A DNA stretch of 32,000 nt from positions 22,780 through 54,779 of the forward strand of contig MTSL01000129.1 of assembly GCA_002794465.1 (NCBI GenBank). Reading direction: 5' to 3'. This DNA is from Paramicrosporidium saccamoebae KSL3 (taxonomy: Eukaryota; Fungi; Cryptomycota). The position numbers and the translations under genes are program-made. The notes below the pieces were generated by a model. The model saw only the letters and a program-made list of their open reading frames with translations, was not told the origin of the DNA and did no database searches. Within the stretch, counting starts at the first letter, position 1, and the number at the start of each line of letters is the position of its first letter. Below are positions 461 to 19,934 of this stretch, piece by piece.

Positions 461-2000
461 TTATCCTTTTACTTGTTGACGGAGCTCTCGCAGTCGCAGA
501 TTGCGTGAAATCATGAGCTGACATTCGCGGCTCCGTTCCCATATTTTGATTGCCTTTAAGACGGCAACAGCAATCTTGGTGCGGGTCTGTAGACGAAGAT
601 ACCATTGACAAAGCCCGCTGTACAACTCATAGAGAACAGTATACTGTGCAGCCAACGGACCTATTATGCCGGGAGTAATCACCGTAGTTATAAACTTGGG
701 ATAACGGATGGAACGGAGAAAAGCAATGGCATTTTTCATGGACGCTTCTGTGCTGTAGTGAGTGAATAGTCGCTGCATCAAAGCGGCCAGTTTGGAGGGG
801 ACTATGAGGCCGTTGCCCAGAAGATCCCATGCGACAAATAGACGCGAGGTATCGTGGTTGTCCCTCCGACTGGGACCCTGCCACAGACTGCGAATAAACT
901 GAGCGCAGATGTCTGTTTGGGACGGCTCATCCTGGTCATGCTTGACCATCAGCAGAACCATTGACATTATCGAGCTGTAATTGGTCGTGTAATATTGAAA
1001 CCCACTAGAGCTGATTAGCGGAACAACCATCCGATGAAACGTCGTCCTGGCCAAGGACAATAATGGGGTGCCTCGACTGCATTGCAACATTCTATTGATT
1101 AGTACAACACGGCGCATACTCAAAGAAAATTAGCAATAGATGAGGGGCTGATCGCAGGGTAATCTCGTTGGGTTCATTACGGAGATCATGTAGACCGCCC
1201 TGTAATAGACCCATTATCGTTCTTAATGTGTCCATCACAAATTCGGGCCTTTCAACTAATTGGGGACGCAAAGCCCAAATCAGTCGCTCGAAGATTTGTT
1301 CCACATCCTGTCGTTCACGTTGATCGGGTGAGTGCAGAAGCAACAAGAGCTGGTGTAAAACTCCCTGGCCGTGGAGGAGTGGGTAAATGTCAGTCCTCAT
1401 GTCACCGGCAGTATAGATCTGCGTCAGAGTGCTGTATATTGTATTGAGGAGCAGATCATAGGCGGGCTCTCTGCATCCGGGAAGCTCTGCATTTATAAAG
1501 TCTCCCCCTTCCCATTCCTCCTCCCCCTCATCATCCTCTTCAGAGCGCTGCCAGAAGACTTTTCTTTGCAATTCCTCCCGCTCACCCATCAGATTGAGGA
1601 AGAGTACTTGCACGAATCGCTCCGCCATGTCATTGCTGAGGAGCTCCCTTCCCTCGCGGTCATTCCAAATCATTTGCATACACATTGCTTTGTATTCCCA
1701 CGCGGCAGTGAGTTGGCCCTCGTACTCGATCATTTCCAGCGAAAACGGTACCCCCACAGGCAGCACTGTCGCCATGACCTCTAGGAAATCCCGCACTACG
1801 TCGATTGTTTCGCTACAATATCATTGATGTCCCATCGATTACTTGGTTGAATCATTGCGTGCCTGCTCGCGCAGCTGCTCGTATTGGAGCAGTGCTTCCG
1901 GATAATATTCGGGTCGGAAGCGGCTCTGATAGTACGAATTCGCTCCCTCTGAACATCCCAAATAAGCGACAATAAGCAACCACCAAAACATGTTGACCAT
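461..2000 (-). CDS. Secreted PP2A B56-like protein, copy g1 (about 493 aa; exons 2000-1843, 1812-1120, 1091-461)
   Basis: Introns 1813-1842 (30 nt, in-frame TAA if retained) and 1092-1119 (28 nt) join three frames. N-terminus MVNMFWWLLIVAYLGCSEG-ANSYYQSRFRPEYYP. B56-like segments in the expected order: acidic loop EEDDEGEEEW (cf. DPEEDEP), LLHSPDQRERQDV (cf. LFDSEDPRERDFL), VVPLISSSGFQYY (cf. LLPLHKVKSLSVY). Confidence 0.75.
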
Positions 2001-2231
2001 GTTCAGAAATTACCATTTAAGGAACGGGCATAATTTTGCACAAAATAGACTATTTACATCATGCACTCAATTAAACACTGTCCCAAAGCTAAGCAATTGG
2101 CGATAGTTTGGCTGTATAAGAGCGACGCACGTATACGTTTACTTGCAGACTGATGGACTGGCAAACAACACTATAAGGATAATTGATTACTTGTTAACCG
2201 AGACACGACACATAACTGATTGTGTAGAGAG

Positions 2232-2975
2232 ATGAGCGGTAGCAAGTCCAAGGTCGTCTTTGTGGGAAATATTCCGTATGAAATGACAGAAGAACAGCTC
2301 ATTGATATTTTCAAGGAAGTGGGTCCGGTGGCCTCCTTCCGTCTCATGTTTGACCGTGAGACGGGCAAGGCGCGTGGCTACGGCTTTTGCGAATATGCTG
2401 ACCCAGAAACGGCAGCCAGTGCAATCCGCAACTTAAATGGCTATGACGTGGGAGGCAGGGCCTTACGTGTGGACCGGGCGGATCAGGAGATGCAGAGTGC
2501 ACCAGTGCCCATGGCGGGGGGTGGCACTCCGAGTTTGGATGCAGTGAATGCAACCCTCGCCGGAATGGGCAATACCCAACTCCTTGAAGTTATGACACAG
2601 ATGAAGACGATGGCAAGCAGTAATCCTGAGCAGACCCGCCAACTGCTCCAAAGCAACCCATCCCTCACCTATGCCCTCTTCCAGGCCATGGTGATGATGA
2701 ATCTCATTGATCCCACCCTCATTCAGGTGCTGATTACTCATATTCTAATCTTTGTAGCAAGTCATGAGCACCCCCACCTCTGCTGGCCAATCTGTCGCCC
2801 CTCCCGTACCCAATGCCGAGCAGCAACGAGAGCTCATTATGCGGATCATGAGTCTCACTCCCGAACAAATTGACGCCCTCCCCCCTCAGCAGCGTGACCA
2901 AGTTCTCCAGCTTGTAATCCACTATCCTCAGATTGTTAATATATGTAGAGAGCACAGTTGGCCCAACAGAGATAA
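2232..2975 (+). CDS. CSTF2: Cleavage stimulation factor 64 kDa subunit / Rna15 (225 aa; exons 2232-2726, 2758-2913, 2949-2975)
   Basis: RRM (VFVGNIPY...RGYGFCEY), hinge (LLQSNPSLTYALFQAMVMMNLID) and C-terminal QRELIMRIMSLTPEQIDALPPQQR domain; introns 2727-2757 and 2914-2948. Confidence 0.93.
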
Positions 2976-2982
2976 ACCTTGT

Positions 2983-17671: not shown

Positions 17672-17679
17672 GAACGATA

Positions 17680-17945
17680 GAGGGAATGTCTGTATTAGAA
17701 AGCGGTTCAATCAGTGGAAATGTCTGTACGAGGAAGCGGTTCAATCGATAGAAATTCTTGTAATTTTATATTAGCTATTAAGCAATCCAGCCAGTCGAAG
17801 GAATTGTCCGTAGTTTTATTAACTGTCAAGCAGTTCAGTCAGTCGAAGGAATTGTCTGTAGGTTGATTAACTGTCAAGCAATTCAGTCAGTCGAAGGAAT
17901 TGTCTGTAGGTTTATTAGCTGTTGAGCAATTCAGCCAGTCGATGG
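17680..17945. repeat. Intergenic 48-bp tandem repeat (3.4 good copies plus degenerate upstream copies)
   Basis: Units start at 17782, 17830, 17878 and 17926 (gcaattcagtcagtcgaaggaattgtctgtag...); shorter decayed units at 17702 and 17736. Confidence 0.85.
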
Positions 17946-18090
17946 GAATGATCATTTTGCATTGGGCACCAAGGCAAAGAAGGCATGTACTAGTATACGG
18001 GAACAATAAATAACATAGAGACACTGCAACAGGTGGAATGTAAAAGGACCCATGTACAAGTGAACTCGAGGATTCGCAAAGACGCAACAA

Positions 18091-19934
18091 TTAAATGTCA
18101 AAGTCGTCTAAAGAGGTCATCTCCAAAATATTCGAGTCTTCCATCTCCTCCGGATCAGAGGGCTCGTTCAGAGCAAGATCTCCTTCATCACTTCTTGGAC
18201 GAGGGGTGGGGATTCTCCTGGTCGTCGGGCCTTCAATGGGGTTTAGTGACAAGACGAGCGTGTCAGCAAGCACATGCTCTGTACCGTCAAGTAAGACGGC
18301 CATCTGAACGGCCTGCTCCTCCTCGTACTGGGCAATCAGAGGCCCCACCTCAGCAGCGAGCTCTAGGAGTTTGGGATAAGCTCTGAAGAGGGATTGTCCG
18401 ACTTTGTGGCGAAACCAGAATGCCAATGCCCGGTACAGGCTGTCCTCTACTAATTGGAATGGTGAATTTTTCAGGAGCCAGTTGCACAGCTCTGTCAGAA
18501 TGATTGATAGGACTTGGTCGGATGTGGCCCGGTTTTGATGCAACATTGATGTCCCAGAAAAGGCCTTGACACACATTGAGGAAGTTAGCGCTTTGAAAAA
18601 AGCCTGCCTGGTTCTCTCACTGATCGTGCATTGCACATGTTTCAGCAATTCTTGGTGCATAGATACTTCCTGGCCCAATGGCACCAGCTGAAATGTCCAT
18701 ATTGAAAGGATAAAATGCACCCTTTGAATATCGACCTCAGTATTTAAATAATGAAGGCTTTTGAAGCTGCACCGCAGACACTTGTGGAACATTTCCAGGT
18801 GGAATGGCGTCTCGAGAAACCTTTTTGATAAACGTAAAAAATTGATCGCATAGTGTTTGCCAAATGCAGTGTATCTCGGCGAGGCAATCAAAGGAATGGC
18901 AAACCGAATATAGAGCTGCTGCAATCGATCCCTAATTTGAGGATGGTCCTGGAAATACTCTATCGCCCTATAGCATTATGACAAAACAGACTTTGCTACT
19001 TGGTCAGAATGGCAATCAACCCTCCAATTGGCCGAGCAGAGACTTTTGTGTTTGCCTCTTTTAGATCGTAGAATCCGGCCTGAATCCATGCGATGGAATT
19101 ACTTATAATTTCCTGGACCATTGGCATGACATTATCTCTAGTTGGCTGTGTTGTTAAAATGAGGTCCCCATCTGGTTGCACTGTTTCTCCAGTTTCTCTG
19201 GTTTCTCTGGGTTGTATGGTTTCTCCAGTAGCTTCAGTCTTTTGGATTACATCTTGGTCAGTAACGTTGGCCGCTTTATGTAGAATGGCCAACCATAGTT
19301 TTCGGATCATCTCAGTCTCTTTCGAATCAGGAGTGTGTAGTAATTTTCCTAGAGTGAACAAGAAACTATTTTGGGAGAAATGCCAAAAGAGACGGCTGTT
19401 GAAGGGAGCGGAAATGAGCAAATTCAGCAGGACCTGGTAGCGAGCCTCGAGGAACTTGTTAGCGACGGGCGTTTCACCGCCAAGTTTCTTGGGATCGAAA
19501 AGTCTTTCTTCATAGCCAAGGAGATTGTCTGTCATCAGCTTGACAAATCGCTTCGCAAATTCCTCCTCCTGAGTTACAATGTGGCGTACGTCCTTGGTCC
19601 AAACCCATCCCAGCAGGCACTCGTGCTGTTTGACGACACGCTGCAAAGTGGCCCTTTCTTGCTCCGTCGCATTATGAGGCAGACTGTATGGCAGCACTTT
19701 TTCCAAAAGGTCAAACATAATCCGCACATTTGCCAAATCGGTCCTATGACGGGGGATGAGATGTGCAATGTAATTGTACCACTTGTTCTTTCTGCAAAAC
19801 AACCGTTTGGTCTCCCTAAACGGTTCCAGGGAGGTGGAAAAATGTTGATATTCGAACCGACTGTGGTAAGAGGCAATGCTGAGACGCACAATGAAAAATA
19901 GGCCGTACAATTGACAATACCAACTCCAAGACAT
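18091..19934 (-). CDS. Secreted PP2A B56-like protein, copy g7 (about 591 aa; exons 19934-19780, 19743-19000, 18967-18091)
   Basis: MSWSWYCQLYGLFFIVRLSIA-SYHSRFEYQHF; intron 18968-18999 and a stop-free 36-nt intron 19744-19779, both at the same codon and phase as the two introns of g1; FLFTLGKLLHTPDSKETEMI; AIPLIASP; QEVSMHQEL (cf. KEVMFLNEL); acidic tail. Confidence 0.72.

Follow-up and report, generated by a model that had tools for sequence, protein, structure and literature searches.

Results

The DNA analysed here (the window) comes from Paramicrosporidium saccamoebae, a parasite inhabiting the amoeba nucleus, and forms the terminal 32 kb of its contig MTSL01000129.1. Seven spliced genes (g1-g7) were recovered on the strands and at the coordinates given in the initial annotation. 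All positions are those of the window.

g1, 461-2000, minus strand: type A, 493 aa; exons 1843-2000, 1120-1812, 461-1091; introns 1813-1842 (30 nt), 1092-1119 (28 nt); leader MVNMFWWLLIVAYLGCSEG; YQSRF 1917-1931; LLHSPDQRER box 1311-1340
g2, 7422-8837, plus strand: type B, 451 aa; exons 7422-7438, 7472-7584, 7612-8837; introns 7439-7471 (33 nt), 7585-7611 (27 nt); leader MWGVFFLLGVAVASF; YRGRF 7518-7532; LWYSPDGKER box 8022-8051
g3, 9095-10508, plus strand: type B, 437 aa; exons 9095-9126, 9163-9251, 9286-10232, 10263-10508; introns of 36, 34 and 30 nt; leader MLHVNVIVLLLVAACSC; FKGRY 9188-9202; LLHSPQLSER box 9696-9725
g4, 10975-12508, plus strand: type B, 500 aa; exons 10975-11092, 11124-12508; intron 11093-11123 (31 nt); leader MLLLILLCFCSFISCS; FQGRY 11026-11040; LLQSPIRRER box 11549-11578
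g5, 12696-14321, plus strand: type B, 510 aa; exons 12696-12816, 12850-13703, 13732-13905, 13938-14321; introns of 33, 28 and 32 nt; leader MQIFSVLLLLVPLAV; FQGRF 12750-12764; LLQSPIQEER box 13284-13313
g6, 14648-16367, plus strand: type B, 543 aa; exons 14648-14694, 14724-15774, 15805-16022, 16052-16367; introns of 29, 30 (GTT start) and 29 nt; leader MELVIVRVGTLLIFLAGLGYSVCS; YRSRY 14755-14769; LLISPILEER box 15232-15261
Tfb2 (TFIIH p52), 16388-17671, plus strand: Pfam Tfb2 E 6.7e-69; not a family member; directly after the g2-g6 array
g7, 18091-19934, minus strand: type A, 603 aa; exons 19000-19934, 18091-18967; intron 18968-18999 (32 nt); leader MSWSWYCQLYGLFFIVRLSIAS, weak, in frame; YHSRF 19854-19868; LLHTPDSKET box 19314-19343

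The initial count of seven was too low. Five further paralogues lie immediately left of the window, and the contig carries at least 12 copies of this B56-like family in a tandem cluster. The array adjoins another expanded family, whose members bear membrane anchors at the N-terminus.

The GenBank models at this locus are fused or truncated, and the introns of g1-g7 were called from the sequence. There are 15 GT..AG introns of 27-36 nt (14 begin with GTA and one with GTT), and all seven spliced reading frames are uninterrupted. The start of g1 is probably the second ATG at 1991 (MFWW...) rather than the first, because in its orthologue 1 nt between the two is deleted. The last intron of g6 as modelled here retains the conserved N-N-K-L, a motif skipped by the GenBank model P0004. 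A phase-1 intron before the W-x-W box is common to g2, g3, g4 and g5, and a phase-0 intron before 'TK' to g3, g5 and g6. The seven proteins are collinear in alignment, with identities between copies of 17-33%. Most pairs were significant by BLASTP (33% identity and E 4e-92 for g4/g5; E 7e-31 for g2/g3), g6/g7 being the sole non-significant pair among them (E 5.8). The motifs reported initially, L.IY..VLP, LL.SP...ER and (Y)L.PF, were all found in g1-g7, and the C-terminal N/D-x-K-L/I of g2-g6 was seen in the alignment. Within the LL.SP...ER box, the glutamate is present in 7/7 copies and the arginine in 6/7. The C-terminal tail is acidic in g7, acidic and Ser-rich in g5, and repetitive in g6 (NLNSRFGD; tandem repeats 16116-16181 and 16223-16296). 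In g7, an insertion of about 50 aa follows the box.

At the extreme N-terminus of each of the seven proteins there is a leader of 8-17 hydrophobic residues, free of charged and strongly polar ones. The best 8-residue Kyte-Doolittle hydropathy of the leaders was 2.5-3.8; among control proteins of the window it was at most 2.1 for housekeeping proteins and 2.48 for a predicted secreted chitin deacetylase. The leader of g7 is the weakest. As had been proposed, tiny introns (one or two in each gene) part the leader from the main reading frame in g1-g6, and the g7 leader is in frame. The splicing of leader exons onto the genes was accepted because metagenome orthologues differ exactly at the introns and many homologues read the leader in frame. 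The g5 orthologue (L003/P0006) encodes leader and body in one reading frame, with a DNA gap of exactly 33 nt at 12817-12849. In the g2 orthologue (L006), intron 1 is 35 nt against 33 nt, a 2-nt indel confined to the intron between gap-free exons. The g1 orthologue (L007) keeps both leader and intron 1. Directly after the leader, every copy carries [YF]-x-[SG]-R-[FY], for which the family consensus is Y-Y-R-S-R-F-H-P-E/D-Y-F/H-P. About 25 independent homologues have the leader and this segment in frame; leaders were seen in all five extra paralogues left of the window and in 7/10 reading frames of the syntenic array of a related organism. No leader was visible in the g6-like P0046, P0048 and P0069, which have a C-terminal hydrophobic tail instead; these may reflect an annotation artefact or a membrane-bound branch.

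The family consists of very divergent true homologues of B56, a regulatory subunit of protein phosphatase 2A (PP2A), rather than generic HEAT/ARM proteins. This assignment, made initially from short motifs, proved specific, with Pfam, hhalign, the profile search and Foldseek in agreement. In Pfam, B56 was the only recurrent family; of the 79 proteins compared (family members and relatives), 35 matched it at E<0.01. Spliced g1 scored 34 bits (E 2.2e-8; cut-off 25), the raw unspliced g2 reading frame 23.8 bits, and g7 had an E of 0.002. The hhalign comparison with canonical B56 gave 97.5% probability and E 5.2e-12 over 234 columns; it stops short of the last B56 repeats, and the C-terminal B56 motifs are not alignable. 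An exhaustive search of 1.84 billion proteins with the family profile returned 79 matches, 61 of them with E below 1e-10, and the only non-family ones were four canonical B56 proteins. In the PDB, the top profile match was B56alpha, weak and tied with SF3B1. The proposed order of boxes also holds: LL.SP...ER corresponds to LFDSEDPRER, and YL.PF to the V/I-L/I-P-L box of B56. These two boxes, common to B56, form the best-conserved block of the family (the glutamate occurs in 70 of 71 sequences), which suggests that some ancestral constraint persists.

The AlphaFold models of g2 (pLDDT 93.5) and P0020 (pLDDT 93.6) were searched with Foldseek, and PP2A B56 chains ranked first for both independent models, with TM scores of 0.52-0.60 for g2 and 0.61-0.67 for P0020 (normalised by target). 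Importin-alpha and designed-armadillo matches reached TM scores of at most 0.39 by either normalisation and at most 0.35 by query length. The N-terminus of TSC2, a non-B56 solenoid, appeared at rank 42 for the g2 model (TM 0.43-0.44). The HIV-1 Vif structure PDB 8SZK was also met in the g2 search. The models predict an eight-repeat HEAT-like solenoid kept whole in both subfamilies, with the Y-x-S-R-F segment modelled as an ordered part of the fold. Scattered cysteines and a cytosolic-type solenoid would fit a reducing host compartment.

Several departures from canonical B56 concern its binding surfaces. Tyrosine occupies the position of B56alpha Y215 in 0/71 family sequences, and the positions of H212, R213 and R222 are variable. 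In B56alpha, Y215Q and R222E abolish LxxIxE docking (PMC9974998). The canonical LxxIxE substrate pocket is lost. B56alpha K227, after the SP...ER helix, contacts D177 of the A subunit; the equivalent segment after the box helix carries variable insertions among the paralogues. Since both models share only 12-15% identity with B56, at an rmsd of 6-9 Å, the surfaces binding the PP2A A and C subunits may be gone.

A related uncultured organism has ten family copies, nine of them consecutive and just upstream of Tfb2; on its metagenome contig (L004) nine same-strand reading frames end directly upstream of that gene, as g2-g6 do. Tfb2 is 50% identical between L004 and P. saccamoebae, whereas the closest family matches between the organisms are 21-30% identical. 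The array beside Tfb2 is old and syntenic, and the family evolves fast, faster than Tfb2. It is a lineage-specific tandem expansion of Paramicrosporidium-like Rozellomycota. Most likely, an ancestral B56 gene was duplicated, gained a leader and went through repeated tandem duplication and divergence. This history of duplication and leader gain most probably predates the split of P. saccamoebae from the L004 organism.

Discussion

The initial annotation read these genes as secreted effectors mimicking PP2A subunits. The B56 homology and the leader exons of that reading have stood, whereas the loss of the LxxIxE pocket and the insertions in the A-contact segment speak against mimicry in its simple form. 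The best overall explanation, which we hold tentatively, is that the proteins are secreted B56 descendants acting on the host PP2A core. Their leaders would probably carry them into the parasite secretory pathway. With somewhat better than even chances, they would then leave the parasite or be displayed at its surface, their site of action being the host nucleus or cell. The weakest step, and a doubtful one, is that they would take the place of the B subunit on the strongly conserved A-C core of host PP2A. There, they would serve either as stand-in regulatory subunits that bring new substrate specificity or as blank competitors displacing host B56. Targeting would come from the variable insertions and the charged C-terminal tails. 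Secretion-type leaders on tandem, fast-evolving relatives of B56 make these proteins good candidates for exported, host-directed proteins.

The same departures from B56 would also suit exported or surface scaffolds aimed at targets other than PP2A, the solenoid serving as a stable, evolvable binding platform for diverse host nuclear proteins or as a decoy. Repeat proteins are common effector scaffolds, and the very low B56 identity, the lost pocket, the insertions in the A-contact region, the strong divergence of the copies and their variable, charged or repetitive tails all agree with this explanation. Yet the best-kept block is B56's own LL.SP...ER with YL.PF, suggesting ancestral constraint, and the full eight-repeat architecture is kept in both subfamilies; we consider it possible but rather unlikely. 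A leader indicates ER entry only, so the proteins could instead belong to the parasite's own ER/Golgi lumen, plasma membrane, spore wall or polar filament apparatus, with no direct action on the host. The membrane-anchored neighbouring family, the possible C-terminal membrane tail of the g6-like branch and the fact that spores were the sole RNA source behind the GenBank annotation favour such a role. However, an all-helical solenoid of this large size, with unpaired cysteines scattered along it, would be unusual in a lumen or wall, at least 12 rapidly diverging copies suit host interaction better than a structural role, and Pfam scans of the family linked it to no known spore-wall or polar-tube protein. 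This role is improbable in our judgement.

Still less probable is that nothing is secreted, the N-termini being non-functional or cytosol-facing anchors of divergent subunits of the parasite's own PP2A. The B56 homology and the weak g7 leader would allow this, and the family may comprise the only B56-type genes of the P. saccamoebae genome. Against it, leader position and character are kept in about 25 homologues and in the arrays of two organisms at 20-30% overall identity, and hydrophobic cores of this length, with small residues after them, resemble signal peptides rather than anchors. Moreover, canonical B56 ranks among the most conserved eukaryotic proteins, whereas this family outpaces Tfb2. 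Chance reading frames, pseudogenes or mis-spliced models, conceivable where the GenBank models are defective and introns were called from sequence alone, are effectively refuted: seven models are stop-free across 437-603 aa, paralogues share intron positions and phases, the spliced products agree with orthologues and with intronless homologues, pLDDT is above 93, and 61 profile matches lie below 1e-10.

The nearest known system is PP2A B56 itself (B'/PR61; PF01603; PDB 2NPP, 2IAE, 6NTS, 8UWB). The family is homologous to it by profile, carries its LL.S.D/P..ER and L-P-L/F boxes in matching order and, as modelled, adopts its all-helical HEAT-like solenoid from end to end. Unlike B56, the family has a Y-x-S-R-F segment and variable insertions after the box helix, and the LxxIxE pocket residues are missing. 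B56 is encoded by one or a few highly conserved genes, the family by at least 12 tandem, fast-evolving copies. The secretion-type leader sets it apart from every described B56; the initial annotation knew of no secreted B56 family, and our literature search likewise found no description of one with a secretion leader.

HIV-1 Vif, SV40 small t and adenovirus E4orf4 act on the host PP2A system, small t by displacing B subunits from the A-C core. Toxoplasma GRA18 acts on host PP2A-B56 (PMC6214654). The phosphatase system is the one proposed here, but none of these four is a B56 homologue; they bind or degrade host B56, or bind the A subunit, via unrelated folds. Microsporidia, also intracellular fungal-related parasites, have large lineage-specific signal-peptide families, among them InterB and the large gene families of Nematocida (PMC10393165), which are likewise tandem and rapidly evolving; these families are not known to show B56 homology. 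The Phytophthora (L)WY-LWY RxLR effectors, such as PSR2, are surrogate B subunits recruiting the host PP2A core enzyme (10.1101/2023.05.05.539533; 10.1101/2025.06.14.659724). They too are expanded, modular, helical-repeat proteins, and the action proposed for the present family follows the same idea, replacement of the B subunit on the host A-C core. They are secreted, and PP2A binding by PSR2 is demonstrated; here secretion is predicted and PP2A binding proposed. Being unrelated to B56 in sequence and fold, the LWY effectors mimic by convergence, whereas the present family descends from B56. A precedent for that route comes from the sister lineage, the microsporidia. Their hexokinase, by origin a cytosolic housekeeping enzyme, acquired a signal for secretion and is delivered to the host; experiments support its secretion (PMC3514677, PMC3976299). 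There, the route was taken by a single enzyme gene; in P. saccamoebae, it would have been taken by an expanded set of regulatory subunits.

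Gene models and leader exons

The seven B56-like genes of the window (g1 to g7) and Tfb2, the anchor gene that follows g6, are arranged as listed below.

461-2000, minus strand: g1, type A, spliced product of 493 aa
7422-8837, plus strand: g2, type B, spliced product of 451 aa
9095-10508, plus strand: g3, type B, spliced product of 437 aa
10975-12508, plus strand: g4, type B, spliced product of 500 aa
12696-14321, plus strand: g5, type B, spliced product of 510 aa
14648-16367, plus strand: g6, type B, spliced product of 543 aa
16388-17671, plus strand: Tfb2
18091-19934, minus strand: g7, type A, spliced product of 603 aa

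Reading of the junctions in the window DNA showed that each of the seven genes is one unbroken ORF after removal of tiny introns. There are 15 such introns, 27–36 nt in length. Fourteen of them start with GTA and one with GTT, all end with AG, and a CTRAY-like branch site is found close upstream of the 3' end in several. According to exon lengths and alignment, a phase-1 intron immediately 5' of a W-N/D-W box is common to g2, g3, g4, and g5, and a phase-0 intron immediately 5' of a conserved Thr-Lys is common to g3, g5, and g6. The seven proteins align collinearly and form two types, A (g1 and g7) and B (g2 to g6). Their pairwise identities are 17–33%, and the closest pair is g4 and g5 (E 4e-92). 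The seven related spliced genes described in the initial annotation were thus confirmed by stop-free spliced ORFs and a collinear alignment. The shared motifs that it named were all located in g1 to g7, the C-terminal one being read off the multiple alignment.

The extreme N-terminus of all seven copies is a hydrophobic run of 8–17 residues with no charged or strongly polar residue, followed by small residues. The best 8-residue hydropathy of these leaders is 2.5–3.8, and the housekeeping proteins encoded in the window do not exceed 2.1. A polysaccharide (chitin) deacetylase homologue at 28216-29061 (plus strand), predicted to be of the secreted type and carrying a signal-like N-terminal leader, served as the positive control and gave 2.48. 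The hydrophobic C-terminal end of this deacetylase is reminiscent of a GPI signal. In hydropathy, length, position, and the small residues before the putative cleavage site, the leaders of the family are signal-peptide-like. They are also conserved, being found in all seven window genes, five neighbouring copies, and many homologues. A [YF]-x-[SG]-R-[FY] motif, not stressed in the initial annotation, stands immediately after the leader in each copy, and the family-wide consensus of this post-leader segment is Y-Y-R-S-R-F-H-P-E/D-Y-F/H-P. The segment was considered as a free host-targeting peptide of the PEXEL/RxLR kind. This candidate was dropped because the segment has a pLDDT of about 95 in the AlphaFold model, which points to an ordered part of the domain.

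That the leader exons belong to the genes was borne out by metagenome relatives of g5, g2, and g1. In the g5 orthologue P0006 (contig L003), leader and body are continuous in a single ORF, and its DNA alignment with g5 has an exact 33-nt gap at the predicted g5 intron 1 (12817-12849). The g2 orthologue on contig L006 keeps both introns. Its intron 1 is 35 nt long against 33 nt in g2, and the adjoining exons are gap-free. A 2-nt length difference is tolerable only in an intron and therefore supports splicing of the g2 leader. The g1 orthologue on contig L007 keeps the leader and a 30-nt intron. It has a 1-nt deletion between two ATGs, which suggests that the real start of g1 is the second ATG, at 1991. 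By eye, A/T-rich TTAAAT- or TAATAAA-like elements are seen about 20–35 nt 5' of the ATGs of g1, g2, g3, g5, and g6 (for example at 2010-2020, 7390-7400, and 12683-12692). Their closeness to the start codons suggests very short 5' leaders, and they are perhaps a shared promoter element.

Deposited annotation and neighbouring genes

By an exact protein match of its intact Tfb2 ORF, the window is the right-hand end (final 32 kb, bases 22780-54779) of the 54,779-bp contig MTSL01000129.1 in assembly GCA_002794465.1. The accession MTSL00000000 belongs to the genome of Paramicrosporidium saccamoebae, a member of the Rozellomycota that lives as a parasite inside the nuclei of amoebae (PMC5701793). Pfam matches of the other window genes are consistent with a fungal relative; they include a CSTF2-like RRM protein, Tfb2, a Gti1/Pac2 regulator, an SH3 protein, thymidylate kinase, the polysaccharide deacetylase, and a WD40 protein.

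The GenBank models at 6598-12508, 12969-14321, 15079-16367, and 18091-19962 are fused or truncated. A single 1430-aa model merges an ORF at 6517-7143 with g2, g3, and g4, and the model P0001 merges g1 with the adjoining gene. The models of g5, g6, and g7 are without leaders, and their internal splices differ from those of the corrected models. The deposited annotation was made by MAKER with Augustus trained on Rhizopus, and the RNA source was ethanol-stored spores (PMC5701793); the faults at the locus can be explained by this training and this RNA. Introns of 27–36 nt seem to have been overlooked systematically, which probably affects both the gene count and the secretome as published. A secretome prediction from these models, which miss the tiny introns and leader exons, would lose at least this family. 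The genome paper and its supplements make no mention of B56, PP2A, secretion, or introns (PMC5701793). Automatic Pfam annotation of the deposited models already gives weak B56 matches, and the bare domain call is therefore not new. What is new is the corrected gene models, the leaders, the family size and synteny, and the loss of the substrate pocket.

The B56-like array is interspersed with a second paralogous family, which has copies at 2983-4632 and 4759-6048 (both minus strand) and a third just left of the window (residues about 470–917 of P0001). Its members have a hydrophobic N-terminal anchor and the conserved core CYRRW(L/I)A..GGGTF(S/V)D(Y/L)D, which resembles in sequence a type II membrane glycosyltransferase with a DxD motif. 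Neither Pfam nor a PDB sequence search gave a match for this family. Its 549-aa copy contains a repetitive stalk, with tandem repeats at 4142-4386. Tandem repeats of 34 bp x 2.1 and of 48 bp x 3.6 (88% matches) also occur in the intergenic stretch at 17685-17942, where the 3' ends of Tfb2 and g7 face each other. A transcription regulator of the Gti1/Pac2 (Wor1) type (20043-21242, minus strand; Pfam E 1.4e-48) adjoins g7. In other fungi, programmes for effectors and morphology are under the control of regulators of this type.

Relationship to B56

Pfam B56 (PF01603) matched spliced g1 with 34 bits (E 2.2e-8), above the cut-off of 25. The raw ORFs of g1, g2, g6, and g7 were below the threshold (23.8 bits for g2 and 17.7 bits for g7). 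Membership is therefore seen for g1 and for the family taken together, while most single members are sub-threshold. An exhaustive profile search, with exon-only window translations and no word index, was carried out against 1.84 billion representative proteins. The 79 matches at E<=0.001 were the window genes and their family, plus, at the tail, four proteins that Pfam identifies as canonical B56 over their full length (E 1e-51 to 5e-91). Canonical B56 was thus the only outsider retrieved by the family profile. Pfam B56 appeared at E<0.01 in 35 of the 79 matches, and no other repeat family appeared more than once. In hhalign, the seven models and the four canonical B56 proteins were aligned with 97.5% probability and E 5.2e-12 over 234 collinear columns. 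LL.SP...ER was paired with LL..PD..ER of B56 and YL.PF with its I/V-I/L-P-L box. Of the box-to-box correspondence proposed initially, these two boxes stand and the third, SSPHFQV, lies beyond the alignment; the C-terminal repeats of B56 could not be aligned with the family. A sequence-profile search of the PDB placed B56alpha first at E 0.013, level with the HEAT repeats of SF3B1, and is not decisive alone. Taken with Pfam and hhalign, the profile signal is specific for B56 rather than generic for HEAT/ARM repeats.

AlphaFold modelled the main exon of g2 with pLDDT 93.5 and pTM 0.90, and P0020, a full-length type-A homologue, with pLDDT 93.6 and pTM 0.88. Foldseek searches of the PDB with both predicted models ranked B56 chains first. 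For g2 the top eight were B56 epsilon, alpha, gamma, and delta chains (TM 0.52–0.60), and for P0020 the top nine were B56 chains (target-normalised TM 0.61–0.67). The alignments cover about 390–470 columns with 12–15% identity and an rmsd of 6–9 Å. The best match other than B56 was the TSC2 N-terminus (TM 0.43–0.44, rank 42 for g2). Importin-alpha and designed armadillo proteins reached 0.39 at most, and AP2 and CNOT1 0.30 at most. The predicted fold is an eight-repeat HEAT-like solenoid nearest to the B56 structures. B56 ancestry of the family is supported by the profiles and the models, and the leaders are supported as well.

Substrate pocket and A-subunit contact

The best-conserved block of the family is the block common with B56. 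The E203 position is Glu in 70 of 71 family sequences and the R204 position is Arg in 54 of 71. The pocket residues were read by fixed offsets from E203 within the same helix, the offset of R222 being the least secure. A read-out by hmmalign was discarded because the B56alpha residues beyond 214 fell in insert states. None of the 71 sequences has Tyr in place of Y215, where L, I, or V is found, and the residues at the H212, R213, and R222 positions vary. The Y215Q or R222E substitution of B56alpha abolishes LxxIxE binding (PMC9974998). The LxxIxE docking pocket (H212, R213, Y215, and R222 of B56alpha) is therefore not retained in the family. K227 of B56alpha contacts D177 of the A subunit (PMC9974998), and the segment after the box helix, where K227 is located, carries insertions of very different length among the paralogues. 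These insertions and the unalignable C-terminal repeats are indirect signs against formation of an A/C holoenzyme. Together with the pocket loss, the 12–15% identity, and the rmsd of 6–9 Å, the insertions argue against a faithful copy of B56. Binding to the A-C core would still be compatible with the altered pocket and the insertions. Any family member that does occupy PP2A would recruit other substrates or no substrate at all.

Family size, spread, and divergence

The seven copies counted initially are real, and the locus holds more. Five extra paralogues, in the same orientation as g1, lie in tandem just left of the window (14298-22775 of the contig part L008). All five have a leader and Y-x-SRF, and three correspond to the library matches P0040, P0033, and P0059. 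The contig thus carries at least 12 copies, with its bases 1-11607 outside the count. A word-indexed search with the seven-model profile had matched solely the fused GenBank model of g1 and is uninformative on family size.

Ten family ORFs were found on a metagenome contig (L004, 66.9 kb, JGI 3300037657) and likewise in a read-archive assembly from that organism. Nine of them are consecutive on one strand, and the array ends directly upstream of Tfb2, as g2 to g6 do. In seven of the ten, leader and Y-x-SRF are in frame without an intron. Since the same array adjoins Tfb2 in both organisms, it is older than their split. The two Tfb2 proteins share 50% identity, against 21–30% for the best family pairs. 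By this comparison of sequences, the family members diverge much faster than the neighbouring housekeeping gene. The arrays of the two organisms thus represent a lineage-specific tandem expansion with rapid divergence. Few eukaryotic regulatory proteins are as conserved as B56, and its canonical form ordinarily evolves far slower than the rates seen here.

All 20 homologues looked up came from metagenomes or read-archive assemblies and were without a functional name (unnamed or 'hypothetical protein'). The metagenome homologues nearest to g6 (P0046, P0048, P0069, and also P0055) start with Y-R-S/G-R-Y-A-P-E-L-H-P and show no visible leader. This branch has a hydrophobic C-terminal tail of about 20 residues, a possible membrane anchor. 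Its leaders may be in unannotated exons, and the proteins would then be type I membrane proteins.

Possible function

The leaders make it likely that the family proteins enter the secretory pathway. Action in or on the host has a prospect slightly better than even. It is plausible because the proteins are large solenoids of a cytosolic type with scattered cysteines, have been multiplied, and evolve fast, and because the parasite grows in the host nucleus. As a last step, the capture of host PP2A suggested by the initial annotation is reasonable and can be proposed tentatively. Exported true descendants of B56 would assemble with the host A-C core in the host nucleus. They would act there as surrogate B subunits with a rewired or blank substrate specificity, and the tandem array would be a repertoire of specificities. 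This full course of export and surrogate assembly is rather unlikely.

The main rival is a secreted scaffold of B56 fold with targets other than PP2A. It shares the leaders and the fold with the surrogate-subunit reading, and the pocket loss and the insertions around K227 would suit it; the conserved block common with B56 speaks against it. We regard it as possible though doubtful. An internal secretory or envelope role in the parasite ranks after it and is quite improbable. The leaders would agree with such a role, and the features that make host action plausible speak for the other side. Ranked last is a non-secreted regulator of the parasite's own PP2A. The leaders of all seven window copies stand against it, and we consider it very unlikely. 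Canonical B56 has, to our knowledge, been described solely as an intracellular subunit.

If host PP2A is captured by surrogate B subunits, this would be the first case in which a parasite takes over a host phosphatase with exported homologues of the phosphatase's own regulatory subunit. A leader-bearing family of B56 fold, in a dozen or more tandem copies that diverge faster than Tfb2, would be a new parasite route to a central host signalling enzyme. As a naturally occurring collection of B56 scaffolds with changed binding surfaces, the family would also help to tell the parts of B56 for A/C binding from those for substrate choice. The Rozellomycota, early-diverging fungal parasites, gain a concrete and testable candidate effector family.

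Comparison with known systems

No secreted or leader-bearing B56 family was found in the literature searched, in agreement with the initial statement that none was known, and no described effector of the Rozellomycota was found there. By descent, the closest relative is B56 of PP2A. Canonical B56 is cytosolic or nuclear, has no signal peptide, is highly conserved, and occurs in few copies. In contrast, the family has leaders, at least 12 copies on one contig, and only 21–30% identity between its best pairs. By evolutionary route, the closest case is a hexokinase of microsporidia that acquired a secretion signal (PMC3514677, PMC3976299). GRA18 of Toxoplasma binds host B56 and does not resemble it (PMC6214654). 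By proposed action, the closest are the LWY effectors of Phytophthora such as PSR2, which occupy the place of the B subunit on host PP2A (10.1101/2023.05.05.539533). Their fold is unrelated, and the likeness to the family would be a functional analogy only.
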